From Octopus bimaculoides (lineage: Eukaryota), in assembly GCF_001194135.2 (NCBI RefSeq), contig NC_069003.1, forward strand, positions 34,219,677 through 34,278,264: a stretch of DNA of 58,588 bases, given 5' to 3'. The notes under the pieces were generated by a model that made no database searches, was not told the DNA's origin, and was given only the letters and a program-made list of their open reading frames with translations. This document shows, in pieces, positions 3,229 to 58,588 of this stretch. Position 1 is the stretch's first letter. Every line of letters starts with the position of its first letter. A program made the position numbers and the translations under genes.

Positions 3229-3516
3229 AAGCAACTTCTAGACTAAAGGCAACTGCTAAATTTGAAGCAGTTTCTAGACTTGAGGCAACTGTTAAATTTA
3301 CAATAGCATCTAGATTTGAGGCAATTGCTAGATTTAAAGCAACTTTTAGACTTGACGCAACTGCTACAGTTAAAGCAGCTGCTGTATTTGAAGCAACTTT
3401 TAAACATGAAGCAATTGCTAAATTTGAAGCAACTTCAAAATTTAAGGCAACTACTAGATTTAAAGCAACTTCCAAACTTTAAGCAATTGCTAAATTTGAA
3501 GCAACTTCAAAATTTG
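3229..3516. repeat. 18-bp minisatellite, about 16 units (consensus aagcaactkctaratttr)
   Basis: Units such as aagcaacttctagacttg and aggcaactgctaaatttg can be read directly, with partial 36-bp higher-order alternation. Confidence 0.9.
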
Positions 3517-8807: not shown

Positions 8808-9974
8808 TCAAGACACGGCAGTGTTGTGTGAACCACTTCTTATATCAGTTATCTGAATCGAACCCATTTCGCATTCAGGTAACATTTCAACATCAATACA
8901 GTTTCTGGGACTAAAAAGTTCTAATTTACTCATCTTACGAGAACTGACAGTACTTTCGTTAGGAGTCACCTCTACACAGTCATCTTGGTCACTATCTAAC
9001 TGGCTCACATTTTCGTTTTTAATAGTGAAACTAATATTTGACGAATTCCTCTTGTTAGCCGACTGTCTCTGACGCACAGTGGAACCGTTTTGAAAGTCAA
9101 TCAGAGATCTCGTGTCGGAGAAACTAGAAGTGTTTGTCGGCAAATGCTGAAATGATGAAGTAGGGATGTTGTCTTTCTCATTAAGAGAAGATTCGTTAGT
9201 ATGATTTACCAATTCCTCTGTCGCTTGATGGAAGTTGGATGAAACGGCAGGATTTAGGTGATCTTCCATATCAGAATGTTGGCTATATTTCTCATCATCG
9301 ACATTAATTGGTTCGATTTTAATGGCATCATCCAGTTGGTAATCGTCCATAGAGCTTACAAGTTTTGCCGATCCGCTCGAGGAACCTACATTAGCGTTGG
9401 CCACCTGGTACATATCAGATTGGCGGTCTTGATGCAATGAAGAGTAGCCAAACCTTTGACGTACGTGTGCCTCGTGCAAGAACTTTTGGTTCATTGCAGC
9501 TGTAGGAACATCGGAGTCGTCGATGAATGAATGGGAATTTACATACTGCTGTTGCTGCTGATGTTGTTGCTGTTGCTGCTGATGTTGTTGCTGCTGCTGC
9601 TGCTGAATGTGCCGGACTTTGTTCTGCTGTCGATGGTAAACAGGCGTCGTCCTGAAGCCACGCCCAGAGTGTAAATTGATGTTATTAAGGCTGGAGGTTG
9701 AAGTCTTTCGGTTGTCTGGGGTAGTCATCAAGTTGGCATCACAGAGCAATTCCAGTTCTTTAATTCCAAGCTGTAGAGCAATCAGCAGCAACTGGTCTAA
9801 GAGTCTGGGAGTCAGACTCAGGACACCGTTGTACATATACTCAGCAAAGGCTGTAAGGGCCTCTCGACTGACTCTTTGGGGGAAATTTACCTGCAGGAAA
9901 CGGTTGGCTTGTACATCTGCATTAAACATAGACAGCAGTCTTGGACAGATTGCCAACAGCACGACTTTGTGAAC
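8808..9974 (-). CDS. DUF3504-BTB fusion gene, coding exon 6 (terminal): C-terminal BTB half plus polyQ/low-complexity tail
   Basis: Acceptor ttttctttcag| at 9975, phase 0. Reads VHKVVLLAICPRLLSMF...ALTAFAEYMYNGVLSL...LLLIALQLGIKELELLC, typical of BTB. Open to TGA at 8808-8810. Confidence 0.9.
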   Translation of the reverse strand, partial: VHKVVLLAICPRLLSMFNADVQANRFLQVNFPQRVSREALTAFAEYMYNGVLSLTPRLLDQLLLIALQLGIKELELLCDANLMTTPDNRKTSTSSLNNINLHSGRGFRTTPVYHRQQNKVRHIQQQQQQQHQQQQQQHQQQQQYVNSHSFIDDSDVPTAAMNQKFLHEAHVRQRFGYSSLHQDRQSDMYQVANANVGSSSGSAKLVSSMDDYQLDDAIKIEPINVDDEKYSQHSDMEDHLNPAVSSNFHQATEELVNHTNESSLNEKDNIPTSSFQHLPTNTSSFSDTRSLIDFQNGSTVRQRQSANKRNSSNISFTIKNENVSQLDSDQDDCVEVTPNESTVSSRKMSKLELFSPRNCIDVEMLPECEMGSIQITDIRSGSHNTAVS

Positions 9975-11251
9975 CTGAAAGAAAACATAAATAACAACAA
10001 CATTAGTTTTGCTCCAGCATGACCACAGCCACCTGGCTGAAACACATAAAAGAATAACATTTCATACAGTCACATTAGTTTTACTAACACTTCAAACAGT
10101 CACCGGTGCAGGCATGGCTGTGTGGTTAAGAAAGTTTGCTTCAAAACCACATGGCTTCAGGTTCAACCCCAATGTTGGGCAGTTTGAGGAAAATGTCTTG
10201 TACTATAGCCCCAAGATAATCAATGCCACACGAGGGAATTTCGGTAGAAGGAAACTACAGGAAACCCATTGTGTGGGTGCGCATGTATGAATGCACATGT
10301 ATGTATGCATGCAAACATGACTGAATGCAGATATTCCACACTGTCACTGCTTCAGAACCAAAAAAATGTTGTGCATTGTCGAAGACCCATGGAATCAAGA
10401 TATCCCTTGCTTGAACAACAGTTAAGGGTTGGTAATAGGAAGGGCATTGTCATCACCATTGTCAACCCATGCCAGCATGGAAAGCGGACGTTAAACGATG
10501 ATGATGATGATGATTTGCCATCCTTGCATGGATCAGTTGCAGGATGCCCTTCCTGTTGCCAACCCTCACCTGTTTACAAGCAAAGGTGAGAATTCTCCCA
10601 AATACACTCAGGTGTCCTGAATTTTTCATGGAAGATTGAAAATGAATAAGCATTACATTTCACAGAGAAATCAGAATGCTAAAGGGTTAAGCTGCTGTTT
10701 GGAACAGAAATCAGAATTAATTTTGATAGAAAGCTTTAATTTAGATCTACGAGTAGCCCTAAATGTGAAATAGCAGCAACATATGACAAATGAAGGCCTT
10801 TATGGAGACCTGCCAAAAGTTAGCAAGAAGATCAGGCAAAGATGACTGTGGCTATCTGGTCACTGCATGCACCGCCCTGCAACTGGAAGCATCCAAATAA
10901 GTCTTGTGGAACCCACTTCATGGTGATGTAAGAAGAGGAAAATGTCATTACACTTAAATTTGACTATTTGATTGCAGACTCTGGCCTGGATAAGTATCCA
11001 GGCCCTCAAGGCCATGATGATGGACCGAGAAGTGTGGCAAATGGACTTTGTTGCTGTGGCCAAGGTTGGAACCTGGCCATAATAAATAATTTAAAACATG
11101 AAATTTGCACCAAAGAACCAATGGTGATCTCAGGTATATTGGTATCAAAAAGGTTAAATGATGATGATGATGAGGTGGTGGTGGTGGTAGTGGTGATGAT
11201 GATGATGAAAGGTACTGAAACCAATGTGATGCTAAACAATCGAAAGCTTAC

Positions 11252-11528
11252 CATTATTTTTGTGGTGCCATTACCAATGGCAGCATCGCAGAGTTTACCA
11301 TTTTTCCAGAGTAAGGCCAAACTTGACATAACATTGTGTTGGTGTTCAGAAATAACAATTTGTTGCTCTTCCTCGTCCTCTTCAGCTTCGTCTCCCAAAA
11401 TCTCGATGCTGAACTCATCGGAAACATCCGGACTGTCGAGTGGAATCGGTGACATCTGAGCAGAAGACTTCTCCACAGAGATGTCATTTTTCCCTTTCAA
11501 CATCGTCATGGAGTGGTGTATATTATCC
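11252..11528 (-). CDS. DUF3504-BTB fusion gene, coding exon 5: acidic linker plus BTB N-terminus (LALLWKNGKLCDAAIGNGTTKIM)
   Basis: Acceptor ttttttcctcag| at 11529 (phase 2) and donor ATG|gtaagc at 11251 (phase 0); 277 nt. The LxxLxxxxxLCD motif marks the BTB start. Confidence 0.9.
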
Positions 11529-11928
11529 CTGAGGAAAAAAAAAATGTTCAGATAATTAAACATCGTAACACAGAATAAATGAATGGAGCTGAATTGGTGA
11601 TTCCCAACCATTTCTTGGCTGTGGAACCCTTTTTTTCATAATTTACTCTTCTGGGCCCTCAGACCCATTCAATGTTTCAAAAATCTTGTTTTATTTTATT
11701 CTTTTTTTTTTTTTTTTTTAATTTGCTTCAGTGATTTCACCGTAGTCATGCTGGAGTACCCCCCTTCAAGGGTTCGATCCCAGGAGTGATTTCTTAAGTC
11801 TAGTACTTATTCTATCGGTCATTTTTACCAAACTACTAAGATACAGGGACATAAACACACCAACACCAGTTGTCGAATGGTGATGGGAGGACAAACACAG
11901 ACACCAAGACACACACACACAAATAAAT

Positions 11929-11966
<38 letters not shown>

Positions 11967-12056
11967 GGGAGAATATACAAATAATAACAACAGACGAGGA
12001 CAGGTGGTGTAAATAACAAAAGGATATATTAGTATGACGCTCGGGAATACGGAAAG

Positions 12057-12093
12057 TCTTTGACGTTTCGAGCTACGCTCTTCAACAGAAAGA
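12057..12093 (-). ncRNA. Hammerhead-like motif in a Penelope-type terminal fragment (fragment about 11975-12133)
   Basis: Minus strand TCTTT-CTGTTGA-A-GAGC(GTA)GCTC-GAAAC-GTC-AAAGA; the core has A6>U. Confidence 0.5.
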
Positions 12094-12649
12094 ATACGGA
12101 GACAAGGAGAAAAACACGGAGAAAAAAAATTGAANNNNNNNNNNNNNNNNNNNNNNNNNNNNNNNNNNNNNNNNNNNNNNNNNNNNNNNNNNNNNNNNNN
12201 NNNNNNNNNNNNNNNNNNNNNNNNNNNNNNNNNNNNNNNNNNNNNNNNNNNNNNNNNNNNNNNNNNNNNNNNNNNNNNNNNNNNNNNNNNNNNNNNNNNN
12301 NNNNNNNNNNNNNNNNNNNNNNNNNNNNNNNNNNNNNNNNNNNNNNNNNNNNNNNNNNNNNNNNNNNNNNNNNNNNNNNNNNNNNNNNNNNNNNNNNNNN
12401 NNNNNNNNNNNNNNNNNNNNNNNNNNNNNNNNNNNNNNNNNNNNNNNNNNNNNNNNNNNNNNNNNNNNNNNNNNNNNNNNNNNNNNNNNNNNNNNNNNNN
12501 NNNNNNNNNNNNNNNNNNNNNNNNNNNNNNNNNNNNNNNNNNNNNNNNNNNNNNNNNNNNNNNNNNNNNNNNNNNNNNNNNNNNNNNNNNNNNNNNNNNN
12601 NNNNNNGAATATGAAGATTTTGGGGTTGGAGGTGAGGGGTTCCACTTAC

Positions 12650-12798
12650 TGGTTTTCTCTGTTGTTTTCATTCTGGCTGCTAACAGAATATCTTTGCAAC
12701 ACCTTCAAAGCTCCCACATTCTCCGATGCCATAACGGACCTTTTATTACTGACAAGGTCCACTGTTTTCACTTTCTCCATAGACGTAGAGCTGCTAGA
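12650..12798 (-). CDS. DUF3504-BTB fusion gene, coding exon 4 (SSSSTSMEKVKTVDL...NENNREN)
   Basis: Acceptor ttcgttgcag|, donor CA|gtaagt; 149 nt, phase 0 to 2, matching both neighbours. Confidence 0.8.
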
Positions 12799-12837
12799 CT
12801 GCAACGAATGTAGAACAGACGGGTAATGATTTCTTTC

Positions 12838-12883
<46 letters not shown>

Positions 12884-13408
12884 TAATAGTAATTTCCTTT
12901 ATTTTGTTTTTTTATTATCGTCATCATTATCATTAAATCATTAACATCAAATGAGTCCACAAATGAGTTGCTGCTATGTGGTTGTTCAATGTGTTAGAAA
13001 TAGCAGCTAAACTCCCATTTTTAGACCAGGCCATCCCTCTCAAGGTCTAATGACAGTCAATTTCTTCTAGAAAAAGAGACAGACAGACAAACATATGCCT
13101 TGTAGTACAGCACGGGTATTTTATTTATTCAGCAACCCACAAAAGGAAAAGCAAAATTGACCTCAGCAGTATTTGAACTCAGGGCACAGAGAGCCGGAAC
13201 CAATAGCCCAAGGCAGTCTATCCAACACTAACAAACCTGCCAGTTAACAGCCATCTTGGAAATACATTAAATATTATACTCCTAGGTAGACCGTATGTAA
13301 CCATGAACACATATTCCATCACCGGCTGAATATTGAAGAGCAGGCCCCAACGCAGAAGCTTTAGATGTAAAGACGTAAACATCACAAATAATTATTTGGA
13401 AAGGTTAC

Positions 13409-13500
13409 CTGTAGCTTTGTTGATAATTCTTTATTTAACCAGGAATTGTCTGTTGGACAAGGACTCTGGTTTAAAGGCATATCCATCGAATGGCTAGCAC
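13409..13500 (-). CDS. DUF3504-BTB fusion gene, coding exon 3 (ASHSMDMPLNQSPCPTDNSWLNKELSTKLQ)
   Basis: Acceptor attttacttctag|, donor CAG|gtaacc; 92 nt, phase 1 to 0; this is the only open frame. Confidence 0.8.
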
Positions 13501-13666
13501 CTAGAAGTAAAATAATATAAATAAAAACAGAACCTTTTTTTTTTAAAGAAGAGCTGGGTCAACAAAAACTCGAAAAACTGAAATAGCATCAAAGTTCAAG
13601 AAGGGACCCTTGAAATTATATTCAGTCAATAAGTAAACCAGAAATCTTTGGTGATTGTATGTTTAA

Positions 13667-13882
13667 CCCTTTAGCATTTAAACCTGGCATATCTGGCCCA
13701 ACTATTCTGTTTTATGTTCAAACTGGCCACATCCAGCCTCTCACACCTTTTCTACAATATCATTCTGAAAATAAACAATCACATCATCAAGACCTTAAAG
13801 CCATGAGATAATGTATGATTAATTCAAAATGATGTGAATAAACAAGCATTATATTCGATGGAATAATCTGAATGCTGAAGGG
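13667..13882 (+). mobile_element. piggyBac-like MITE, family 1 (CCCTTTAGCATT...AATGCTGAAGGG)
   Basis: Terminal inverted repeats flanked by TTAA at 13663-13666 and 13883-13886. Related copies near 6170-6395, 10600-10690, 23030-23256, 42405-42605, 44990-45132 and 57985-58234. Confidence 0.8.
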
Positions 13883-14732
13883 TTAAATCTTTGTAGATCA
13901 GGAATCACTATTAGTGAGATAGAAGCATGTTTGGTTGTTTTCCGTTGTTATTGTTGTTGTTGGTATTTTTCAAGCAGTGTTTAGTCTCTTGCCACTTGGC
14001 ACCACCCCAGGCTGCTTTCACCCACAACTTTTAACAGCTGAAACAGAAACTGCCAAGCTGAATAGTCTCCACTCCGTTTCAAGGTCCTTAGTTTCTTCTG
14101 GGAGTTCTCTGAATTATAATGCAACAGTATCTTCATACCTGATGCTTAAAGACTCTTCTCCCCGCAAGATCCTCGCAGGGAGAAGTGGGCACAAGAGATG
14201 AGATGAGATGATTGTTTGGTCTCTGTTTGAGACGTGGTACTGGGTACTCGTAGTACCTACTATGGAGTGGTACTCTATCGTATCGTTGTATCGTCGTCGT
14301 TTAACGTCCGCTTTCCATGCTAGCATGGGTTGGACGATTTGACTGAGGACTGGTGCAACCAGATGGCTACACCAGGCTCCAATCTGATTTGGCAGAGTTT
14401 CTACAGCTGGATGCCCTTCTATGTCCAAAGCATATTAGTTATTATGCAGCAGTAATGTGTGGCCATAGAATTGACCATGCAATGAGGTGGTACTGCATAC
14501 CTATACTGCCTACTATGAAATGGTACTGTGTATCCATGGTGATTACTACACAGTAGTACAGAGTGAGATAAAGCGAAGTGAGGTAAGGTAGAATAAGGTG
14601 TTGTACCTTGAAATACATTAGAATTCTAGCAGCAGATTTGAACTCAAGACTGTGGAGAAAGTAGTCCAATACCATATCCACTTGTCCACAGTCGAACACG
14701 TATTTGAAAATGAAATTCTATTTAATTCTTAC

Positions 14733-14814
14733 CTTTATTGTAGTCTGTGAGACCAAAGCTTTGTAGCTGTGACGAAGATGTTTTCACTGAATTATCAGAG
14801 GTGGTAGGTGTGGT
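14733..14814 (-). CDS. DUF3504-BTB fusion gene, coding exon 2 (TTPTTSDNSVKTSSSQLQSFGLTDYNK)
   Basis: Long T-rich tract then ttttgcag| acceptor, donor AAG|gtaaga; 82 nt, phase 0 to 1. Confidence 0.8.
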
Positions 14815-15039
14815 CTGCAAAAATAGAAATAATAAAATAAAACAAATAAAAACAGTAACAGCTCCTGGCATCAGTAAAAAGTAGCAAAGAGGGGATTTAA
14901 ATGACCCCTTTTAGCATTTTTATCATCATCATCATTAAATGTCCACTTTCCATACTGCCACGGGTTGAATGGTTTGACCGGATGTTGTGAGCCACAGGAC
15001 TGCATCATGCTCCATGTCAGCTTTGGCATGGTTTCTACG

Positions 15040-15091
15040 GTTGACACCTGATGAAGGCTAGAGGGTATATCAACCGAAACGTTGTGTTAAC
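15040..15091 (+). ncRNA. Minimal type I hammerhead ribozyme motif (Penelope-type)
   Basis: GTTGACAC-CTGATGA-A-GG...CC-GAAAC-GTT-GTGTTAAC: 8-bp stem I (one G-U), intact core, palindromic ACGT stem III, weak stem II. Confidence 0.65.
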
Positions 15092-15308
15092 AACAAACAA
15101 AATGAGGACAAATATCCGTCAAATGTAAATAATGTAAATAATTTAAATTTTTATCTTACAAACTGAAATGGGAGCTTGACAAAATTAACTGAATTAGCAT
15201 AGAATAATGGTTTCATATTTTTTTATAATTAAGATCTAAGCTGTTAATATATGAATGCGAAAGAGATAGTTGAATAACTGTAAACCTACTTTTGGGCCAC
15301 CCTGTATA

Positions 15309-15580
15309 CAGTAACACCTCGACATACAAGAGATCGTTTGTAAAGTGGAAACTCATAAAACAAAGCAATAACTTCCTGTAGTAGCAACGAGATCTTGTGC
15401 GCTCATGTTACTCCATTGCAATATGCAGCTGTGTAGATGTGTCAGAACCAGTTGTTGTCACATGTTGTGACATTACCACGCACACAAAATGGCTGTTTAA
15501 CCTTTTTATATTCATTATAAAATAAAACTCATAAACCTGGGGTCTTGTAAAGCAGGCCCTTGTAAAGTGAGGTATTACTG
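15309..15580. mobile_element. Tc1/mariner-pogo (Tigger-like) MITE
   Basis: Imperfect ~22-bp TIRs CAGTAACACCTCGACATACAAG and CTTGTAAAGTGAGGTATTACTG, with TA on both sides. Confidence 0.75.
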
Positions 15581-15586
15581 TATATA

Positions 15587-15780
15587 GTGAAGGCACGTGG
15601 CCCAGTGGTTAGGCTGTTGCACTCATGATCATTAGATTGTAGGTTCGATTCCCAGACTGGGCAGTGTGTTGTGTTCTTGAGCAAAACACTTCATTTCCCA
15701 TTGCTGGAGCAGGGGGAATGTTGGCCTGCTCCTTCTAGCCAGCAGGGTGGCGTCATTTGAATGCTAAAACAATGCTGACC
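15587..15780 (+). mobile_element. tRNA-derived CORE-like SINE
   Basis: gtggcccagtggttagg (A box) ... ggttcgattccc (B box) ... gtgttcttgagcaaaacactt; reverse copies at about 7270-7420 and 22330-22510. Confidence 0.7.
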
Positions 15781-16403
15781 AAAGCCTTGTGACTGGATTT
15801 CATAGAAGGTACATGAAAGAAACCACGTAAAAAGCACTAGCACTGGTGCCACTTGGAAAAACACCCCATACACTGTGTAAAGGGGTTGGCATTAGGGAGG
15901 GCATCCAGCTGTAGAAACCATGCCAAACTGACAATTGTGGCCTGGTGCAGCTTTCACTGAGTAACTTGCGAGACAAAGATCCTTTGAGAGGGGAGAGGGC
16001 ATTGGAGAAGGGGACCAACATAAAATAACAACCAATGAAAATTAAATGACACCTCTTTTAGAATGTCTTCTTCATATTTTGACATATGTAGAAAAAAAGA
16101 AAAAAAAAGTAAACGAAAATAAAAATATGTTAAACACTATGGTTGGTGCTTAACTTTGGTGAAATGAAAACATGGAAAGAATGTGACATATATAAATCTC
16201 CCAGAACGGTATTTTGGTCACATGACAGTGTTAATAATGTAAACATAATAAAGATAAACAAGTTTGTAGGATAAAACTGTGGAGAAGTCCACCAATGTTG
16301 TTGAAATGTCAGATTCTAAAATATTCAGGCTTCACACAATAATTTATTAGGAAAAGTGGAAAATTTGCTTCTAAACCATCAATTTAACACTAATCAATAT
16401 AAC

Positions 16404-16810
16404 ATTATTATTGTTACAGTAAGGCAGTGAGCTGGCAGAATTGCTAGCATGCTGGGCGGTCTGAGTTCAAATTCCACCGATGTCGACTTTGCCTTTTATC
16501 CTTTTCGGGTCGATAAATTAAGTACCAGTTGCATACTGGTGTCCATCTAATTGACTGGCCCCCTTCACCCAAAATTTCAGGCCTTGTGCCTAGAGTAGAA
16601 ATGAATTATTATTGTTACAGTAAGGTGGTGGAGCTGGCAGAATCGTTAGCACACCGGGCAAAATGCTTGGTGGTATTTCATTTGCCGGTACATTCTGAGT
16701 TCAAATTACACCAAGGTCGGCTTTGGCTTTCATCTTTCAGGGTCAATAAATTAAGTACCAGTTGAGTACAGGGGACGATGTAATCGACTTTCCCTTCCCC
16801 CAAACAAGTA
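16404..16810 (+). mobile_element. Two tandem copies of a second tRNA-derived SINE family (aaggcrgtgagctggcagaa...gagttcaaat...gtcgataaattaagtaccag)
   Basis: A-box and B-box-like head in both copies, ~201-bp period. Other copies near 6440-6605, 6775-6975(-), 29095-29245 and 37795-37894(-). Confidence 0.8.
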
Positions 16811-17129
16811 AAAGAATAAAAGAACGACATTGTTTTCAAAATTAATTGGAATAAAGGTGGTTTTTCAACAAAGCTGTTAACAAAAGGGTCAAGTCCCTTG
16901 TTCGTGGACATGATGCAAGGCCAGGAGATAGACATAACCTTCTGGTCATTTCAACGATTGTCCAGCTCACTACCTCTTTCTAAAGACACTAAAGTTAAGT
17001 AAATCAATTCAACGGCCACTCCGACTTAGAAATGGACTTTCTCACACCATCAACACAATGACAAATTCAATGGCTTGCAGTAAACAGTTATGTCCCTTTG
17101 TGTTCTGTCTCTCCAAGTCAGACATTTCT

Positions 17130-17878
17130 AATCACCACCACGACCACCAGCATCGCCAACATCATCATCACCCCCAATATCATCATTGTCAACATCGTCA
17201 AGCCTTCTGCTGTCACCATTACTACCACTACAGCCATCATCACTATCACTATCATCATCATCATCATCATCGTCAACAAGGTCATCAATGGTGTTATAAT
17301 CAATCCTTCCAGTGTCCCCTTTATTATTCTCCTCCTCCTCCTCATCATCATCATCATCACATTTAAAATACTGTTGTTGTTGTTGTTGCTGCTGCTTTTT
17401 TTTGGAGGGGAGGGGATATTTTTGTTGCTTTTTTTGTTGTTTTTTTTTTTAGCAGCAGCCTGAATACACTGCCATTGAAGAAACTCGAAGCCATTTTTGC
17501 TACTTGATAACTTAACAATACCAACAACAACAACAGCAACAACAACAAGCTACCGCTGTTGCTATTGGTGCAGTAGGTGCAGCAGCTGAAATAAATGAAT
17601 AAATAAACAAGCAGAGAAAATGTCAATATATATATATATATATATGGACAATAGTAAATAATTAAATAGCAACAGTGACATAGAATGGTGGCAGTGGTGG
17701 TGGTGGTGGTGGCAGCAGCTGTGGTGGTGGTGGTGGGGGGGCAGTGATGAAGTTAGTAGCAATGGTTATGATGGTAGGAGAAGTTGTGAAGGCGGTGGTA
17801 GAGGTTGTAATGATGGTGGTGGTGGTGGTGGTGGTAGTAGTAGTAGTGATGGTGGTACAGTAGTAGTAGTAGTAGTAG
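17130..17878. repeat. Mixed (CAT/CAC/GTG/TTG)n trinucleotide microsatellite field
   Basis: Direct reading; a similar field lies at 24545-24770. Confidence 0.9.
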
Positions 17879-18642
17879 NNNNNNNNNNNNNNNNNNNNNN
17901 NNNNNNNNNNNNNNNNNNNNNNNNNNNNNNNNNNNNNNNNNNNNNNNNNNNNNNNNNNNNNNNNNNNNNNNNNNNNNNNNNNNNNNNNNNNNNNNNNNNN
18001 NNNNNNNNNNNNNNNNNNNNNNNNNNNNNNNNNNNNNNNNNNNNNNNNNNNNNNNNNNNNNNNNNNNNNNNNNNNNNNNNNNNNNNNNNNNNNNNNNNNN
18101 NNNNNNNNNNNNNNNNNNNNNNNNNNNNNNNNNNNNNNNNNNNNNNNNNNNNNNNNNNNNNNNNNNNNNNNNNNNNNNNNNNNNNNNNNNNNNNNNNNNN
18201 NNNNNNNNNNNNNNNNNNNNNNNNNNNNNNNNNNNNNNNNNNNNNNNNNNNNNNNNNNNNNNNNNNNNNNNNNNNNNNNNNNNNNNNNNNNNNNNNNNNN
18301 NNNNNNNNNNNNNNNNNNNNNNNNNNNNNNNNNNNNNNNNNNNNNNNNNNNNNNNNNNNNNNNNNNNNNNNNNNNNNNNNNNNNNNNNNNNNNNNNNNNN
18401 NNNNNNNNNNNNNNNNNNNNNNNNNNNNNNNNNNNNNNNNNNNNNNNNNNNNNNNNNNNNNNNNNNNNNNNNNNNNNNNNNNNNNNNNNNNNNNNNNNNN
18501 NNNNNNNNNNNNNNNNNNNNNNNNNNNNNNNNNNNNNNNNNNNNNNNNNNNNNNNNNNNNNNNNNNNNNNNNNNNNNNNNNNNNNNNNNNNNNNNNNNNN
18601 NNNNNNNNNNNNNNNNNNNNNNNNNNNNNNNNNNNNNNNNNN

Positions 18643-18693
<51 letters not shown>

Positions 18694-19390
18694 TATATAC
18701 ACAATATATATACAACAGGTTTCTTTCAGTTTCCATCTACCAAATCTACTCACAAGACTTTGGTCAGCCCAAGGTTATAGTAGAAGACACTTGCCCAAGG
18801 TGCCACGCAGTGGGATTGAACCCTTACCACACAGTAAGATTTCAACAAGGACTACAGAAAAATGAATGTTTTGATCCTGGACCTATTCAATTAGGGATGA
18901 CCTGGGGTTAAATAACAAAGTAATGTTAACTACTTGGTCCACTGGTCAACAAGACATCTATATAGTCCTTCAGTCAACTAGAAATAGCAGTCAAATTTCT
19001 TGAAATCACACCATTTTATCTTTAAAAAAGGAAGGGCATACTGACCAATGTAGCCTGAGATATACAAAAAGCTGCAAAGGTCATGGGTGGAATGACATTG
19101 ATCTTAGATTTACATTCTCGTAACTTAGCAGTTCAGCAAAAGGGATCGATATAATAAGTACTAGACTTAAAAAACTAAGTCCTGGGGTCGATTTGCTTGA
19201 CTAAAGCCCTTCAAGGTGGTGCCCCAGCATGGCCACAGTCAAATGACAGAAAGAAGTAAAAGAATAAAATATAAAAGCTTTAATCCCACTCTCTCCAGAT
19301 TCTGTCATTTCATTCCTCCTGGAATCAATAGAATACAATCAATAACATATATGAGATCAATAAACCACATAGTCTGGAAGATATCCTTAC

Positions 19391-20512
19391 CTGTTGTGTG
19401 TTTTTCTCTTCGTCTGCAAACGAGTTGTCCGCAGACGATTCTGCACTGCAAAGGTTTGCCGTAATTGCCTGCCCCATAGAGATCTTGTCCTTGTTGCTAA
19501 TACGCTGATAACCAGAGAGATAAGAAGCTGACTTCTGTCCCATCACAGCCATTATCATATTTGATTCAAAGTATTTCCGCAGAATGGCTGCCCCAGTAGC
19601 TCTTATTGAATGGTTGGTATACGTTCTGGACAAAGAGCATGTTCTACTCAGACCAGACATGAATTTGGCCAAGTTTTTCTCACCAACAGCAGATCGACAA
19701 TACCAGATGTCGTCATCAAAGAATGAATTCTCTCTTGGTCTCTGCCAAAGTCGGTCGCAGTCCGGATGGAGTTTGCTCAGATACAGTTGAAAGGACTTCA
19801 CCGGACACAAACGGCTGCCCACTGACTCCGGCATAACTCCAGTTATGCTTTCAGACTGGTTCTCTTTCGGACTGGATCCAAACTCATCCACTTTGACAAC
19901 AACTTTCAATCCGGATTCTGGATCCTTCATGACGGCAAATGTCGATTTCGTCATTTTGGACATGTTTTCCATTCCCCGTCGAAAGAAATACATGCGTATG
20001 TCAAACTGAACCTTATTCAATAACCCGGCTGGTGTGCTCGGGTCAAAGTAAGCAGATTCATACAAAGACTTTAGGTCGGCACTTGTTATCACTGGATGAT
20101 GTTCGACATCGCCTTTACCGAGTCTTTTCAATTCCATGATCGCTGCCTTGAAAAACTGATTAGCATCGGAAAACTCATTATCTTTGATAATATCAATTTT
20201 TCTAAAATAAGGTGCTGACCTCAAGTATCGGTTTAATCCATATCGAAAGTTTTCTAAAGAGTTCACTTTGTAGTGAGTGCCATCAGCCTGCCTGGCATCG
20301 ATGTAGAAATTTCCAAGACTCTTGTTCAATGTTGGTACGTCAAAGTTTTCAAACTTCTCGTTAAATCCTTTCTCCCTCAGATATTCTCGGAAGTTGTTTG
20401 CTGCAGTCTTATTCGACCGAATAGTTCGGCTAGAACTCATCTTCAAATCAAACGGAATTTCCAGGATGTTTGCAGACATCTCTGTTTTGGCAATGTCTCT
20501 TGAAGAATCCAT
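19391..20512 (-). CDS. DUF3504-BTB fusion gene, coding exon 1: Crypton-derived tyrosine-recombinase-like (DUF3504) domain, 374 aa
   Basis: Uninterrupted ORF with motifs characteristic of CryptonA/DUF3504 proteins: FY..AR..DG..YK..SL..FRYGLNRYL, FFRRGMEN, LCPVKSFQLYLSKL, LWQRP, WY..AVG.KNL..FM, YTNHSIRATG, MGQKS..LSGY. Donor CAG|gtaagg at 19390, phase 0. Confidence 0.9.
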
Positions 20513-20991: not shown

Positions 20992-21149
20992 CTGAAAAAT
21001 AAAAGAGAAAAAGCAACATAAACAATATAACAGAATTATAAATTTTTAGTAGAAAACATTTTTTAAAAGAATGCAAATAGAAAATGAATAAATATATAAA
21101 AAACTATGTTTGAAGTGTTCTATATTTCTCATTCCATTATTTAATCATC

Positions 21150-21575
21150 ATCATCATCGTTTAATATCTGTTTTCCATGCTGACATGGGTTGGACGGTTT
21201 GACTGGGGACTGACAAGCCAGGAGGCTGAACCAAACTCCAATCTGATCTGGCAAGGTTTCTACAGCTGGATGCCCTTCCTAATGCCAACCACTCTGAGAG
21301 TGTAGTGAGTGCTTTTTATGTGCCACTGGCACAGGAGCCAGTCAGGTGGCACCGGCATCGGTCACATTCGGATGGTGCTTTTTACGTGCCACCGGCACAG
21401 GAGCCATCAGGGGGCACTGGCATCGGTCATGCTCGAATGATGCTTTTTACATGCCTCCAGCACAGGAGCCAGTCAGGTGGCACTGGCATCGGCCACGCTC
21501 AGATGGTGCTTTTCACGTGCCACCAGCATGGGAGCCAGTCAGGTGGAACTAGCATTGGTCACATTCGGATGGCAT
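21150..21575 (-). mobile_element. SINE/LINE-tail element ending in (ATG)n, with four internal ~66-bp tandem units
   Basis: catcatcatcgtttaa..tttccatgct..catgggttggacg terminus also seen at 5085, 10470, 14300, 40080 and 54590; tandem unit gtgctttttaygtgccacyggcacaggagccagtcagg at 21309-21571 and about 33450-33655. Confidence 0.75.
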
Positions 21576-26033: not shown

Positions 26034-26080
<47 letters not shown>

Positions 26081-26809
26081 GCACACACATATATATATTC
26101 GATGGGTTTCTTTCAGTTTCTGTCTACCAAATCCATTCACAAGGCTTTGGTCGGCCCGAGGCTATAGAAGAAGACACTTGTCCAAGGTGCTACACAGTGG
26201 GACTGAACCAGGAACCATGTGGTCGGGAAGCAAGGAAGAAGATGAGACGATGACCACAGGTCAGATGTTAGTGGGAGGAAGGAGAAAAGTGGGAGAGAGC
26301 AGAGAGAGAAGGCAAAAGAAGGTGAGAGAGAGAGAGAGAGAAAGGGAGGAAGAGATGTCATATGGAAATATGGAACTATTTACCTGTAAACAAATTTAGC
26401 AACCCTACGTGATGATCCATTTAAATAAGTTAAAAACATATTATAATAAATGTACAAACGAGAAACAAACACAGAAGGTCACCAACTCCTCGTTAGTTAT
26501 TGGTCAGAGGGTCAAACGCAATCCGCACCTTAATTAAATTAGCTTTATTGTTTACAGACATCATACAATTACGTTTTTCTTTTATCTGTCATTTGACTGT
26601 GGCCATGCTGGAGCACTGCCTTTAGCCGAGCAAATCAACCCCAGGACTTATTCTTTGTAAGCTTAGTACTTATTGTATCGGACTCTTTGGCTGAACCGCG
26701 AAGTCACAGGGATGTAAACACACCAACATCAGTTGTCTAAGCAATGGTGGGGGAACAATCACAGGCACACAAACACAGACACGCATAAACATATATATAT
26801 ATATATATA

Positions 26810-33000: not shown

Positions 33001-35026
33001 ACCATCTTGGAATATCCGCAGATGTACAGTGAATTTACATCTCAGATCTCCTTTGACCAGAGTTGAGCATCTGCTTTTTTTTTTGTGGAAAGGACATCTG
33101 TTGGTCAGCCAGTCCATCTGTTGCACACTCTATACCAGTGGTTTTCAACCATTTTATGCCCATCGGCCCCTTTGGTTCCTATTTTATTCTACTGGACCTC
33201 CATAGCCATTTGAGATATATAAAAATCTTAGTCGTTAGCATGCCAGGCAAAATGCTTTCTTTTCTCCTCTCTTATCTTTTACTTGTTTCATTCATTAGAC
33301 TGCAGCCATGCTGGGGCATCACCTTGAAGAATTCTTAGTTGAATGTTAGGTGTTAGGAAGCCAGGAGGCTACACCAGGTTCCAATCTGATCTGGCAATGT
33401 TTCTACAGCTGAATGCCCTTCCTAACACCAACCATTCCAAGAGTGTAGTGGGTGCTTTTTACATGCCACTGGCACAGGAGCCAGTCAGGTGTGCCTGGCA
33501 TTGATCACATTCGGATAGTGCTTTTCATATGCCACCGGCACAGGGGCTAGTCAGGGGGTACTGGCATCATCCACGTTCGGATGGTGCTTTTTACGTGCCA
33601 TTGGCACAAGATCCAGTCAGGGGTTACTGGCATCAGCCACGTTCGGATGGTGCATGTTGTTGTTGATGTTGTTGAAACAAGAGATGAGAATAAACTTCAG
33701 AAATTCCAGTCTGCTGAGCCAACCAACCAAAAAGTCCAAACCAAGGATGGCATCTCTTTGGTCAATCAATATACTAGATATAGCAGCCAAATCTCTCTAA
33801 GAACAACAATGAAGGACATCAGTTTCGATGATGATTATTTACTTATTCAATCAGTTGAATTACTTTCTGGTTGAATTCTTGTCTTAGTGGCTGAGTACTC
33901 CAGAGACATATGTAATCCTGAAGCAGAATCAGGGCGACAAAATGTGCAACAAGGCTGGACCTTTGAATTCCAGATATAATCCATATGACAGGCTTCCATA
34001 TAGTTTCCATCTGTCCAGTTTCATAAAAGGTTTGGTTTGATCTGAGGTTACGGTAAAGATGCTTGCCCAAGGGTGTCATGTAATCACTAGGTCCCAGGAT
34101 CAAATCAGGGATGTAAGGATTGTGAAGTGAACATTTTAATCATTCGCCCATGCTGCATCCAAAAACTGGGCACTCCACCGGTTATGATGAAGAGGGTTCC
34201 AGTCGATCAGATCAATGGAACAGCCTGCTCGTGAAATTAACGTGCAAGTGGCTGAGCACTCCACAGACACGTGTACCCTTAATGTAGTTCTCGGGGAGAT
34301 TCAGCGTGACACAGAGTGGTAAGTAACTTGCTTACCAACATCATGGTTCTGGGTTCAGTCCCACTGCATGGCACCTTGGGCAAGTGTGGTCATTGATCAA
34401 TTTTGCTTCTGCAAAACTCACCAGAAAAATGCTTATTTTTTTTCAATAAAATTTTCAACAAACACCTTTCAGATTGGTGTAGGTTGATGAGTATATCGAA
34501 ATCAAACGTGAAACAATTATAATAATGATAGGTGGACACATCACATATATATGTAACAAATTGGAACCTGAATTTCTGAAAGTAACCATGTGATGTGTGT
34601 CAGTGGGTATGTGTACGCGCTCAGTAACTTTTTGGGGTTTTTTAAAATATTAATTTCCGATATAATGGTAATCTACACCATCTAAAAGATATTTGTAGAA
34701 AAAATCGTAATAAAATATATCCATTTTTCTGAAAGTTATGAGGAAACAAAGTCTATGGGGAAAGGCACACTTGTGTAGGTGTGCCCCGATATTTTCTTTA
34801 CGTTAGTTAACCCAAAAGACTTCTATTGAGAAAAAAAAAAAGTTAAGTTGATTTGAACAGTAACATTGACCTCTAAAAAAAAAAAAGAAAAGAGAGAGAG
34901 AAGGAAAAGAAAAGAGAGAGAGAGGGAAAAGAAAAACTGGCAGCCAAAGATTTCATCTCTTTTTCTTTTCTTGTCCGCCCCCACAATCCCATTTACACCT
35001 TCATCTCAGCTTCAACATTGCCGAAC

Positions 35027-48307: not shown

Positions 48308-48445
48308 CCATGGCTGTGTGGTAAGAAGCTTTCTTCCCAACTACATGGTTCCAGGTTCAGTCCTACTGTGTAGCGTCTTGAGCAAGTGTCTTCTACTATA
48401 GCCTTGTGAGTGGATTTGGTTGCCAGAAACTGAAAGAAGCCCATC

Positions 48446-48502
<57 letters not shown>

Positions 48503-48705
48503 GTGTGTGTGTGCCTTTGTGTCTGCGTTTGTTCCTTCATTGCTTGACAATTGATGTTGGCATGTTTACATCCCCGAAACTTAGCGTTTCAGCAAAAGAG
48601 ACCAATAGAATAAGTACTAGGCTTACAAAGAATAAGTCCTGGGGTTGATTTCTTCGACTAAAGGCAATCTTCCAGCATGGCCGCAGTCAAATGATTGAAA
48701 CGTGT
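48308..48705 (+). mobile_element. tRNA-derived SINE, near full-length representative of the most abundant family
   Basis: Head atggctgtgtggtaagaag...ggttcagtcc(c)act, body gcaagtgtc...gatttgg...gaaactgaaagaagcc, internal (TA/TG)n, tail gtcgattt...ccagcatggccgcagtcaaatga. Other copies at 49113-49460(+), 40990-41170(+), 10110-10270(+), 5205-5520(+), 25780-26230(-), 26580-27225(-), 7555-8255(-) and others. Confidence 0.85.
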
Positions 48706-51700
48706 AAAAAAAGTAAACAAGTTTTTTTTAGTTTTTTTAAGTATAGCTACAAAAGGTAAAACAATTTAAAGCTAAAGTTCACCACACACACACACACACA
48801 CACCAGTGATGTCAGCTTTGAGCTGGCACAATTTTCAATCTCTTAGTGTTTGTAACGTACCATTTTGGCATAGATGCTGGTGCAAAGTTGGCAAAACCTA
48901 CTCTGTGTATAAAACTTAAAAATGTAAACATTTTAAACATGTTTTAAATGGTATTATAAACACAGCAAAGATCAACGGGTCCACCTATGAGACTCAAACC
49001 ATGATATCTAATGGACCATGTTGTTCTGTTTCATCTTTAATTATTCTGTACTATTATCATTTACTTTATTAATTATGATTATAATTTCTACTTGTTAATG
49101 TAGTGTTTCTATAGGCATAAGCGTGGCTGTATGGTAAGAAATTTGCTTCCCAACCACATGGTTCCGGGTTCAGTCCCACTAGCTCAAGCCAGTGTCTTCT
49201 ATAGCAATGGGCTGACCAAAGCCTTGTGGGTGGATTCAATAGATGGAAACTGAAAGAAGCCTATTGTGTGTTTGTGTGTGTGTTCCCCAAGAATTCTTGA
49301 CAACTGTTGTTGTTTTTTTTTTTACGCCTCCCATAACTTAGCAGTTTGGCAAAAGGGACCAATAGAATAAGCATCGGGCTTAAAACAAGGTACTGGGGTT
49401 GATTTGCTTGACTAAAATCTCAAGGCAGTGCCCCAGCATGGTCACAGTCTAATGACTGAAACAACTATAAAAGACACTATAGTGCCGTAGTGTACGTAAT
49501 ACTGTATTTCCTGGCAGACCAGTCTGTATGGCATATAGTGTAAGCATGTAGTTTTAAGCTAACAAACATCGTCACTATCTTTCCAAATCCAGCTGCGTTT
49601 CACATGGAATTGTTGGTGCNNNNNNNNNNNNNNNNNNNNNNNNNNNNNNNNNNNNNNNNNNNNNNNNNNNNNNNNNNNNNNNNNNNNNNNNNNNNNNNNN
49701 NNNNNNNNNNNNNNNNNNNNNNNNNNNNNNNNNNNNNNNNNNNNNNNNNNNNNNNNNNNNNNNNNNNNNNNNNNNNNNNNNNNNNNNNNNNNNNNNNNNN
49801 NNNNNNNNNNNNNNNNNNNNNNNNNNNNNNNNNNNNNNNNNNNNNNNNNNNNNNNNNNNNNNNNNNNNNNNNNNNNNNNNNNNNNNNNNNNNNNNNNNNN
49901 NNNNNNNNNNNNNNNNNNNNNNNNNNNNNNNNNNNNNNNNNNNNNNNNNNNNNNNNNNNNNNNNNNNNNNNNNTAAGTTACATTTAAGTACAAAATTGTG
50001 ATTAATTTGAAGCCATAAAATACTCAACAATGATTTCAAAACCCATTATTTTGAGATTTAACTCTTTGAAATTACAATTCAAATATTATGAAATGCTGTT
50101 CAGATGAAGATTCAATTAGTCAAATGTCTATCATAATTTCATGTCTGCTTTCCATGCTGGCATGAGTTGGACAGTTTGGCAGAACCTGAAAAGTTGGAGG
50201 CCCACTTAATGCTCCAATGTCTTGGTTTGACGGTTTCTACTGCTGGATACTCTTCCTAATGCCAACCTCTTTACACTGTATTGATTGCTTGACTTCACGA
50301 TACCAGCACTAAACAGGTTCTCCTCTCGATTCCGTATTGCCTCTACTTGATTTGGAAACCCCTTATAAAGTGTACTGAGTACCCTTTTTTTTTGTTTTTG
50401 TATCACTCCAGTGTAGGAACTTTGTGACTTGCATTGCTAAAGAGACCCCATGACTGAAAGGAGCTAGAATACAACAGTGTGATGACTGTAGGTGAAGTGA
50501 GGAGAGGGGATAAAATATGAATGAGAGGGTCGTAGTGGAGAGAGTATCAAACTTGATGGGGGTGGGTATTAAAGTAGTTAGTACCAGGGACTGGAGAGAG
50601 AGAGAGAGAGAGGCTGGGTAGTAATGTATATTTTAATAAAAGTATAACTTAAACAAATAAAATCAATCTTCAGTTTTGATCAATTATTTTAGTTTTGTTT
50701 GCTAATTGCAATATTTCATTCCTTCAGCTGCTCACGTTTGTCTCCTGTAATGCTTTGTTAATTGAGGTTACATCAGAATCGTTGAAGTTATTGCTGCTGC
50801 TGCTGCCATCACCATCGTTTTTAGGCCTTCTTTCTGGACCCTAGACTCGTGTAGTGCAGTTATAGCAGCACATATGTCCTTTATTTACCTCTGTTAACTT
50901 TTTTTATATCAACATTGGAGCTAGGAGTAACCTTTGCATATTGTGACTCACTCTGCCACATCAACAGTTCTCAGTTATTGATTTAAAAAAATATATATAT
51001 ATAAAGTAGGTTAGACTATTTCAATGTATTCAAATCCAATACATAACTTGTGTGTGTTGCATTAAATTTGGATTTATTTCAGCAAGCAGTAACTATATAA
51101 AATTTTTACTTGGTCTAATATGTCTTTAGAGGCTTTTTATCTCCACAGTAAAGCTTTGTGTGTGATGATACTACAATCACTGGCTAAGAAAGTAAAAGTA
51201 TTTTTGTAATTGTAACAATTTGGTGTACTTTTAGAGTTAAATATTAAAAGAAATTTTTTGATTCTGTTTTATCTCGTTTCTTTTCTTTCTTTTGTCTCCA
51301 ACTGCAATTGTTTCTCTGTGACAGGAGAGTTGCTGATTAGTTTCTGACATTTTAATGTGACTGGTTGATTTATGCTGGGTGAAAAAGTGCAATGTTGGTG
51401 GTGACAAGTACTTTTTGAGAAGCAGTAAGACCAGAAAGATTTCAGAAAATATACTCAAGTTGGTCTTGAAGAGTTTGGCCTAATTGATAAAATGATGTAT
51501 GGGGGGGGGGGGGATATGTAAGACTTAATCTTTTATAACTTTGGAAAATGGACATTAAAAAAAAAAATTTAACCTCCTTGTTTCTGTTGAAATCACTGGC
51601 TTTATCTGNNNNNNNNNNCAAAAAATTAACACAACTGTTACTTCTATCGCTAATTTAGAAGATTAAAACCAAGTCTTAGATGAATTCCTCAAACATGTTT

Positions 51701-57500: not shown

Positions 57501-57867
57501 TGTGTGTTCATGCTCATACCACCCACCATTCCTCAACCGCTCCGCTCCCCCCCACACACACTTTCAATGTCTATCTGGCAGTATTTGCACTGCTGCTTAT
57601 TTTCCTCCGTGTGTTTTATGTAGAAGCTCTTTCTATTTTACTTAATATTGATGTTCTTTGTTACTTAGGTGTGTGTTTCTGTGTACATGTGTTTAAATAT
57701 TTTCCCTTAGTCCTGGTTTAAATGCTGAAGAACTACCTGTGTATCTGTGCGACATAGGCAAGACTTTCTAAAGACAGACGATTTACTATCAGGTGTTGTT
57801 TGACATTGACATGGCTCCACCCCTTAGCAATCAGATTATTCTGACAAATGCAATGCCTTTTCAGTCG

Positions 57868-57958: not shown

Positions 57959-58234
57959 GTAGTTTCGAAATTATGACAAAGTGACTGTAAATGTTATTAT
58001 AGCATAGTGGGGTAGGTGTGATAAGTTGGATCTGGCTGGCCAGAAGATAAGACAGATAGCACCTTTGGGATAGATATGGCTGGTTTATATGCTAAAGAGT
58101 TAAATTAATCAAGCATTATCGTGTAGCTTTAAAATTTTGAAGATGTTAGTGTTTACTTTTAGAATGACAATGTAGGATAGGTGTGAGAGGTCAGATCTGG
58201 CCAGTCTTAACATAAAACAGGTAGAATATTTAAA

Positions 58235-58588
58235 GAGAGCCTGCCTTATGTCGACCCAATAGAGGGACCAGCTATCCGAGTTGATAGTACCAGGGTAGAT
58301 AAAGCAATTAAGAGTATGAAGACCGGGAAAGCCCCCGGCCCATCAGGAATCACTGCAGAGATGCTCAAAATATCTGGCAGTGTTGGCTATAGCCTAGTCA
58401 CCCGTATTACGAACCAGGTGATACACGAAGGAGTCATACCCTATGACTGGTGTAGCAGCATCATAGTCAACTGCTACAAAGGTAAAGGGGACGCTTTAGA
58501 TACAAATAATTACAGAGGCATCAAGCTGTTAGATCAGGTTATGAAAGTTACAGAGAGGGTCATAGCCCAACTAATTAGGGAGCGAATC
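58235..58588 (+). mobile_element. RTE-clade LINE, 5'-truncated; intact-looking start of the RT region, runs off the window
   Basis: 118 open codons: ...VDKAIKSMKTGKAPGPSGITAEMLK...GVIPYDWCSSIIVNCYKGKGDALDTNNYRGIKLLDQVMKVTERVI, typical RTE RT N-terminal motifs. Confidence 0.9.

Follow-up and report, generated by a model that had tools for sequence, protein, structure and literature searches.

The locus described here raises the question of whether a Crypton-type tyrosine-recombinase domain and a BTB/POZ domain, encoded by separate exons on one strand of octopus DNA, belong to a single gene and, if so, whether the product is still a recombinase or a host regulator built from one. The sequence analysed, called the window below, comprises 58,588 nucleotides (nt) of Octopus bimaculoides contig NC_069003.1 (positions 34,219,677 to 34,278,264 of the forward strand). 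A preliminary description of this DNA had chained six GT-AG exons, with intron phases 0,1,0,2,0, into a 2889-nt coding sequence in which splicing fuses a DUF3504 domain in frame with a BTB of the ZBTB/Kelch type. A scripted rebuild reproduced that model: the six minus-strand exons, with the same phases, join into 2889 nt encoding 962 amino acids (aa) with one terminal stop, the acceptors being AG behind pyrimidine tracts and the donors GTAAG or GTAAC. The Pfam families DUF3504 (PF12012) and BTB (PF00651) were both recognised on the spliced protein, and the recombinase assignment was joined by a fold match. From the N to the C terminus the product comprises a tyrosine-recombinase domain, a disordered linker, about 180 aa long and rich in Ser/Thr, that closes with an acidic patch, a BTB/POZ domain of the long form, a Gln-rich stretch and a disordered tail in which a conserved [IV]KxEP motif precedes acidic residues. 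The window contains a genuine and intact protein-coding gene that is spliced. Exact look-ups of the exon 1 open reading frame (ORF) and the exon 6 ORF, as well as of the related protein P0095 introduced below, found nothing on record.

Exon 1 (20512-19391, minus strand like the rest of the gene; 1122 nt, aa 1-374) contains the entire DUF3504 domain and ends in phase 0 at a CAG/GTAAGG donor. It is followed by exon 2 (14814-14733; 82 nt), which encodes Ser/Thr-rich linker, and exon 3 (13500-13409; 92 nt), also linker; both are provisional, having been placed solely by an open frame and GT-AG sites. Exon 4 (12798-12650; 149 nt) has GT-AG sites and shows, in addition, a weak above-shuffle similarity to the linkers of Sepia and of a second species, around the pattern NKR...K[IV]L[QR]RY (p 0.04 and 0.006). 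Exon 5 (11528-11252; 277 nt) encodes the end of the linker, the acidic patch (aa 523-537, 11407-11363) and the N-terminal strand and helix of the BTB (aa 538-574, 11362-11252). Exon 6 (9974-8808; 1167 nt including the stop) starts in phase 0 at VHK and carries the remainder of the BTB (aa 575-660, 9974-9717), then a run of Gln and His (aa 698-717, 9605-9546) and the disordered tail, in which IKIEP with its acidic run (aa 792-796, 9323-9309) is followed by IKNE (aa 892-895, 9023-9012). By sequence comparison, exons 1, 5 and 6 have strong homology support. The last junction (..TKIM/VHKVV..) lies inside the BTB, is colinear with the messenger RNAs (mRNAs) of both relatives and agrees in position and phase with that of a paralogue from Octopus sinensis, whose first exon likewise ends in phase 0, at a similar ..EKDQ/GT position. 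When exon 5 was compared with a genomic contig of a related species (L014), it proved 95.7% identical, with zero indels and both splice sites kept, and the flanking introns were 76-78% identical with many indels.

Two assembly gaps fall within the gene, and both are fully intronic. The first (17879-18642), bordered by (TA)n, lies in intron 1 (14815..19390, minus strand) together with copies of SINE-like (short interspersed element) repeats, and the second (12135-12606) lies in intron 4 (11529..12649, minus strand), beginning 43 nt past the exon 4 donor, which is itself sequenced. Because no codon spans either gap, the frame across them is irrelevant. Moreover, exons 2 and 3 together (174 nt) and exons 4 and 5 together (426 nt) are each divisible by three, so that the frame from DUF3504 to BTB holds irrespective of whether exons 2 and 3 are correct, and since the Sepia mRNA is contiguous over the junction of exons 4 and 5, no hidden exon is needed in the second gap. 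Physical continuity across the gaps cannot be proved from the window sequence alone; the exons nevertheless run in the order and on the strand expected from intronless mRNA contigs of two cephalopods and from the chromosome-level paralogue of O. sinensis.

The evidence that carries the fusion comes from these relatives. A full-length search retrieved two proteins, P0001 (926 aa) and P0002 (966 aa), that contain both PF12012 and PF00651. P0001 was read from 24 contigs of 3.9-4.6 kb, with a 927-aa sister sequence on 103 further contigs, and P0002 from 21-22 contigs of about 3.8 kb; each P0001 and P0002 contig consists of a single uninterrupted ORF with untranslated regions. One source run, SRR23936181, is Illumina RNA-seq of Sepia esculenta larvae, and the second species is probably a decapodiform cephalopod. 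The orthologue contigs are spliced mRNAs carrying the recombinase-BTB fusion as one ORF. Transcripts joining the two domains, on which the preliminary description had made its proposal depend, therefore exist in S. esculenta and in a second cephalopod. The opposite explanation is that two genes, or a Crypton copy and a nearby BTB gene, were joined artificially, either by mis-scaffolding across the intron 1 gap or by exon chaining that was too permissive. This could draw on the 764-nt gap between exon 1 and the remaining exons, on exons 2 and 3, which have no independent support, on an alternative reading of exon 1 as a stand-alone ORF of 395 aa, on read-through ORFs of 406-409 aa called on 16 cuttlefish contigs, and on the model deposited for another cuttlefish, Acanthosepion pharaonis, which has linker, BTB and tail only. 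It is very improbable, however, given that both domains occur in one ORF on more than 100 intronless cuttlefish contigs and on 21-22 in the other species, that octopus RefSeq paralogues from chromosome-level assemblies have an equal architecture, that exon order, strand and phase in the window fit the relatives exactly, and that selection on the domains (see below) is unlike that on a decaying transposon copy. The A. pharaonis protein (P0167, CAE1321133.1, 481 aa) falls in the same 90% cluster as P0001. Its deposited genome model, from which the DUF3504 exon is missing, indicates that automated annotation can split the fusion, and the DUF3504-BTB family is probably under-counted.

Exon 1 and the S. 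esculenta mRNA are 73% identical at the nucleotide level and 79-80% at the amino-acid level. The ratio of non-synonymous to synonymous substitutions (dN/dS, Nei-Gojobori) between P0001 and P0002 was 0.039 for DUF3504 and 0.039 for the BTB, against 0.24 for the linker and 0.21 for the tail. Synonymous sites are saturated when the window is compared with either mRNA, yet amino-acid identity amounts to 76-79% in DUF3504 and 67-69% in the BTB, the values for Sepia being 79% and 69%. Both domains are under strong purifying selection. The preliminary description had named a DUF3504 exon present in many copies and free of purifying selection as the finding that would speak against it; the value obtained was 0.04, and the window holds one copy. 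Given this low ratio and the high amino-acid identity despite saturated synonymous sites, the locus is an old host gene and not a decaying insertion. No direct or inverted repeats and no Crypton-style ends were found around exon 1. An active Crypton was considered and rejected: relatives splice the ORF to BTB exons, the window contains a single copy, and no element ends are present.

The identity of the exon 1 product rests on both profile and fold comparisons. Pfam DUF3504 was matched at aa 144-286 (20083-19655), with 33.0 bits in the spliced protein and 36.0 bits in exon 1 alone (cut-off 29.7), and a weak match to the QRICH1 domain was found at aa 43-121 of the spliced protein. An AlphaFold2 model of exon 1 reached a mean predicted local distance difference test (pLDDT) of 75.9, falling below 50 at aa 317-336, the segment that contains the nucleophile tyrosine. 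Comparison of this model by Foldseek gave as best match QRICH1 in the Zincore complex (9hjt_H, E 4e-9), followed by the Cre structures 1drg and 1f44 and the Tre structure 5u91 (E about 1e-5) and, more weakly, by lambda Int, XerH, Flp, XerA and Ndc10 (E 2e-3 to 1e-2). Because the model matches QRICH1, Cre/Tre and lambda integrase, exon 1 is predicted to encode a complete two-lobed tyrosine-recombinase fold of Crypton type, spanning aa 25-360 (19433..20440, minus strand). A profile search of the PDB with one alignment (A1) was taken over by a fragment of dynein, fused into one of the Mytilus models, and returned no recombinase alignment.

The BTB was recognised by Pfam PF00651 at aa 555-656 of the spliced protein (45 bits, cut-off 20.5; E 1.4e-11). 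A phmmer search of the PDB with the window BTB matched ZBTB17/BCL6, IVNS1ABP, SPOP, SLX4, ZBTB7A and KLHL3, with no KCTD protein among the matches, and the predicted order of secondary-structure elements is beta1-alpha1-beta2-beta3-alpha2..alpha6. Foldseek on a low-confidence model of the domain returned SPOP, BCL6, MIZ1, ZBTB7, PLZF and KEAP1, all of PF00651 type, with marginal scores that lend weak support. The domain is thus assigned, from its sequence, to the PF00651 class (ZBTB/SPOP/Kelch) and not to the KCTD/T1 class. No zinc-finger family was found by Pfam in the 962-aa protein, and the C-terminal C2H2 fingers of ZBTB factors are missing. Searches with the BTB only, first as a single sequence and then as a six-sequence profile, against an index of 5.8 billion proteins yielded only short genomic fragments and no outgroup BTBs, so that no BTB tree was built.

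The class of the BTB also bears on whether the gene is nothing but the orthologue, in molluscs, of the long isoform of vertebrate KCTD1, in which DUF3504 likewise precedes a BTB. The representative of that isoform examined here (P0124), one of the best 150 from the HMMER scan described below, combines DUF3504 with BTB_2 (PF02214) and KCTD1-15_CTD (PF20871). The DUF3504 domains of P0124 and the window share 39% identity (E 2e-53), and a Mytilus DUF3504 protein has been automatically named 'KCTD1_15'. Nevertheless, BLASTP between the two BTBs found chance matches only (E 0.82), Pfam found neither PF02214 nor PF20871 in the window protein, and the KCTD1 fusion has been reported only from jawed vertebrates (PMC3212892). 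Orthology with KCTD1 therefore deserves hardly any credence and was rejected on account of the class of the BTB, the missing KCTD1-15_CTD and the lack of similarity between the BTBs; the grouping with KCTD1/15, which the preliminary description had foreseen as an outcome contrary to its view, was not seen. Since the BTB classes differ without detectable similarity and the KCTD1 fusion is limited to jawed vertebrates, the two recombinase-BTB fusions are independent, as had been proposed.

Alignment of exon 1 with mollusc relatives placed the active site at 19508..19978 (minus strand). The positions are R179 (19978-19976), E182 (19969-19967), K203 (19906-19904), H301-x-x-R304 (19612-19601) and the nucleophile tyrosine Y335 (19510-19508); at Q326 (19537-19535) a Gln stands where the usual residue is His or Trp. 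All of these residues, Q326 included, occur in P0001 and P0002 as well as in the window protein, so that the R-H-R-Y tetrad is complete in the window protein and in both orthologues, the changed residue being the extra His/Trp position. About 70% of the 135 closest relatives keep R, E, H-x-x-R, H and Y in an alignment guided by a hidden Markov model, and a count of signatures in these 135 confines the replacement of His/Trp by Gln to the window lineage. The segment around box II matches Pfam Phage_integrase (PF00589) in several relatives; in one of them, P0010, the segment homologous to that of the window passes the threshold (29.1 bits versus 27.1, profile positions 109-171). Within aa 296-356, 46 of the 61 residues are identical across the window protein, P0001 and P0002, which come from three deeply diverged species. 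In contrast, the BTB-fused proteins P0003, P0038 and P0095, and two further DUF3504 exons of the octopus paralogue locus described below, stop shortly after HxxR, several of them without R and E. The window lineage is thus the sole BTB-fused lineage keeping the full recombinase C terminus, including the nucleophile tyrosine. All vertebrate DUF3504 genes, which are domesticated Cryptons, have lost the tyrosine and the second arginine (PMC3212892). The domestication put forward in the preliminary description is upheld by the orthologues, the expression in relatives, the purifying selection and the fusion to host exons; what does not go with it is that the tetrad was not lost.

These observations raise the possibility that the protein is still an enzyme, that is, a tyrosine recombinase kept by the host or a type-IB-topoisomerase-like protein, assembled through its BTB and forming a 3'-phosphotyrosine link at Y335. 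Besides the intact R179-E182-K203-H301-R304-Y335 set and the conservation of a tyrosine segment that other BTB-fused lineages have dispensed with, a fused oligomerisation domain would be compatible with catalysis, recombinases being dimers or tetramers. The possibility is unlikely all the same, because the conserved His/Trp position is a Gln in the window lineage only, neither recombination sites nor repeats turned up in the vicinity of the gene, and every characterised animal DUF3504 gene is non-catalytic (PMC3212892). Moreover, the model is unreliable around Y335, which places the geometry of the active site beyond check. In its most specific form, in which a coleoid host tyrosine recombinase, oligomerised by its BTB, would still be catalytically competent via Y335, as a site-specific recombinase or topoisomerase-like enzyme, and would have been kept by selection since before the window species and the cuttlefish separated (a split that is probably the octopod-decapodiform one), the proposal is decidedly doubtful.

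The reading favoured here, with a probability of roughly 0.7, is that the gene encodes a nuclear, self-associating regulator of DNA or of chromatin and transcription with a recombinase-derived targeting head. The recombinase-derived domain would act as the targeting module, either by binding DNA directly, as a Cre-like clamp, or by binding transcription factors on DNA, as QRICH1 does in Zincore. The long-form BTB would drive dimerisation or oligomerisation and the recruitment of partners, and the KxEP site might be sumoylated, as in many repressors. The sequence psi-K-x-E is a sumoylation and synergy-control consensus typical of repressors, and [IV]KxEP followed by acidic residues occurs in the tails of all four DUF3504-BTB lineages recognised below but in only 0.6% of shuffled tails. 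QRICH1-SEPHS1 is a coregulator of zinc-finger factors, according to Bianchi et al. 2025 as cited in PMC13538652. The alternative heads of an octopus paralogue, described below, would fit DUF3504 being, by analogy, one of several interchangeable DNA-targeting heads.

A different role for the same domains, also suggested in the preliminary description, is that of a Cullin-3 (Cul3) substrate adaptor, whose BTB would bind Cul3 while the recombinase-derived part would deliver a target, chromatin-bound or otherwise, to be ubiquitinated. Links to Cul3 exist in the KCTD family, to which the other recombinase-BTB fusion belongs, and SPOP, IVNS1ABP, KLHL3 and KEAP1 are among the proteins whose BTBs gave the best sequence or structure matches. 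The ZBTB-type BTBs of MIZ1, BCL6, ZBTB7 and PLZF match equally well, however. In addition, at the level of sequence, the phi-x-E contact for Cul3 in the alpha3-beta4 loop is without its Glu, the M-F-E of SPOP aligning to F-N-A or M-F-N (..SMFNAD..), and Pfam found no BACK domain or 3-box, the sequence after the BTB being of low complexity. A Cul3-linked function is accordingly the weaker of the two suggestions and quite improbable, whereas the oligomerising DNA-binding regulator is retained as the favoured, inferred role.

Several points weigh against the regulator reading or the model underneath it. DNA binding, dimerisation and sumoylation are putative for every member of the family. A pure binding role does not explain the retained tetrad and the conserved C terminus, a segment dispensed with in the other BTB-fused lineages and in vertebrate DUF3504 genes. 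The AlphaFold2 model of the BTB, built from six sequences, is poor (pLDDT 56.7). The transcript support comes from relatives and not from the source species, and exons 2 and 3, which have no significant similarity to the Sepia linkers, are provisional.

The gene is one member of a wider cephalopod family. A full HMMER scan covered 1.84 billion proteins, of which the best 150 representatives were examined. Pfam scans of proteins matched over several stretches, together with cluster look-ups, distinguished at least four cephalopod DUF3504-BTB lineages. The first consists of the window protein, P0001 and P0002. The second is represented by P0003 (O. sinensis LOC115209932) and its O. bimaculoides orthologue LOC106877732, the third by P0095 (O. 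sinensis LOC115220336; 'BTB domain-containing protein' in UniRef) and its O. bimaculoides orthologue LOC106879774, and the fourth by P0038, known from mRNA contigs of the same sequencing project as P0002. Two of the lineages are already in Octopus RefSeq under the name 'uncharacterized protein'. The BTBs of the lineages share the family-specific residues LW..(x)..CDA, and the intron in the BTB of P0003 equals that of the window gene in position and phase. The DUF3504 halves are only 33-44% identical among lineages, which is lower than the 47-52% between the window domain and bivalve DUF3504-only proteins. In a neighbour-joining tree of 126 DUF3504 domains, a distance method applied to long degenerate branches, the BTB-fused lineages were not grouped in any of 100 bootstraps, and DUF3504 may have been captured once or repeatedly. 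Among the best 150 representatives, no protein from outside the cephalopods combined DUF3504 with PF00651, and the bivalve and gastropod relatives have DUF3504 without a BTB. The fusion had been ascribed to molluscs at large in the preliminary description; what remains of that attribution is the cephalopods. A literature search that paired DUF3504 with cephalopod or octopus terms, or used the four LOC identifiers, brought up no account of the family. Other close relatives of the domain are fused to KRAB (P0110), C2H2 zinc fingers (P0039, P0077), ATF7IP (P0134) or Harbinger-type DDE_Tnp_4/THAP (P0049, P0063, P0140); some of these fused relatives still match Phage_integrase, and some may be chimeric gene models.

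The second lineage shows an unusual organisation. At the LOC115209932 locus (L013:9968-70248, O. sinensis CM016861.1), an array of intact ORFs on one strand lies upstream of two shared BTB exons. These head ORFs comprise three different DUF3504 domains, DUF4817/HTH_32, an HTH_29-like domain, CENP-B_N with HTH_Tnp_Tc5 and four THAP-like domains, one of the last confirmed by Pfam and three recognised only by a scan for the C2CH pattern. In O. bimaculoides, the isoforms of LOC106877732 are numbered up to X32 at one locus, X1 having DUF3504 and BTB, X10 CENP-B_N, HTH_Tnp_Tc5 and BTB, and X32 HTH_psq and BTB. The octopus paralogue thus looks like a reversed complex locus of the lola/mod(mdg4) type, in which variable transposon-derived heads are attached to a constant BTB body. 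A survey from 2023 reported that octopus THAP and CENPB factors carry a BTB and made no mention of Crypton or of such a locus structure (PMC10027918). Unlike LOC115209932, the window gene has one head exon within the 38 kb upstream. Over that distance, tblastn of ten octopus head ORFs against the window matched exon 1 only, no THAP motif was found in the window, and the flanking ORFs of at least 58 aa contained no Pfam family.

As regards the surroundings, the preliminary description had placed the gene next to HUWE1, a neighbour that could not be located in the window: six-frame translation contained no C-terminal HECT motif, and no Pfam family was found in about 7,000 residues of flanking ORFs of at least 58 aa or in seven selected ORFs, a search that short exons could escape. 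No other Pfam-recognisable coding ORF, no tRNA gene and no Rfam match were found in the window, and intron 1 contains no ORF with a DNA-binding domain. Interspersed SINE-like repeats shared with the O. sinensis locus make up about 7.3 kb (about 12% of the window), with a median identity of 79%. They form 45 intervals within 4971-58231 (for example 26057-26234, 48311-48731 and 21144-21405), several copies lying in introns of the gene. Two tandem arrays of a 66-nt unit (21309-21572, 4.0 copies; 33452-33653, 3.1 copies; 81-83% matches) have a near-equal consensus, overlap repeats that the O. sinensis locus also contains and probably belong to one repeat family. Shorter arrays with periods of 33 and 18 nt occur near the left end, at 1060-1251 and 3229-3516. 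At the right end, a long low-complexity tract rich in CT/GA (55980-57620) flanks the largest gap (56183-57151), and (TA)n or (TATG/TACA)n microsatellites adjoin most of the assembly gaps. An open frame on the plus strand that runs off the end of the window (58211-58588) carries ..PGPSGITAEMLK..IPYDWCSSIIVNCYKGKGD..NYRGIKLL... and resembles the start of a reverse transcriptase from a retrotransposon without long terminal repeats; the truncated piece had no Pfam match.

The domestication of a Crypton recombinase by fusion to a host regulatory domain is of a known kind, exemplified by KCTD1, ZMYM2/3/4 and QRICH1. What is new here is the PF00651 BTB as partner, the occurrence in another phylum, the existence of a multi-lineage cephalopod family and the retention of the catalytic tetrad. 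The animal cases described so far have all lost catalytic residues, and the role of DUF3504 is only emerging through QRICH1 in Zincore; the window gene therefore offers a natural setting in which to ask whether the chemistry of a tyrosine recombinase can survive 'domestication'. The cephalopod pattern of one BTB-plus-tail module with many transposon-derived heads, supplied in one octopus locus by alternative first exons, may have helped regulators to multiply in this clade. The gene adds to the pattern of transposon proteins turned host regulators, its own function being inferred.

Compared with known systems, the gene resembles the long isoform of KCTD1 (isoform b), in which an N-terminal Crypton-derived DUF3504, encoded by one or more upstream exons, likewise precedes a linker and an oligomerisation domain of BTB fold. 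The differences lie in the BTB, which in KCTD1 is of the T1/KCTD type and is followed by the KCTD1-15 C-terminal domain, whereas the window gene has a PF00651 BTB and a Gln-rich disordered tail, and in the recombinase, which in KCTD1 has lost the second arginine and the tyrosine (signature REFHG--; PMC3212892), both of which are kept in the window gene. QRICH1, ZMYM2/3/4, WOC and KIAA1958 share the DUF3504 family and fold and are also host genes under selection, fused to regulatory modules that act in transcription and chromatin; their partners, however, are CARD or MYM zinc fingers and not BTB, and they have lost the tetrad that the window gene retains. The resemblance to Crypton transposons themselves (CryptonA-like) lies in the 45-52% identity of the domain to mollusc DUF3504 proteins of 400-600 aa, which keep R-E-H-R-H-Y and in part pass Pfam Phage_integrase, whereas the window domain is one exon spliced to host exons, with conserved orthologues and strong selective constraint. 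The octopus paralogues LOC115209932/LOC106877732 and LOC115220336/LOC106879774 have the same combination of DUF3504, PF00651 BTB and [IV]KxEP tail, LOC115209932 sharing also the position of the BTB intron and having a BTB 56% identical to that of the window; being paralogues, they differ in their recombinase domains, which end after HxxR and in which R and E are lost. Precedents for the use of BTB are the Drosophila Pipsqueak-type BTB-HTH_psq proteins, lola and mod(mdg4). Pipsqueak-type proteins, like the BTB-THAP and BTB-CENPB proteins of octopus, combine a BTB with a domain captured from a transposon, but fusions of BTB to domains of DDE transposases have captured a small helix-turn-helix or zinc ribbon, and the window gene a complete tyrosine recombinase. 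In lola and mod(mdg4), finally, the BTB lies at the N terminus and it is the 3' exons that vary, whereas in the window gene the BTB stands at the C-terminal side of its transposon-derived head.

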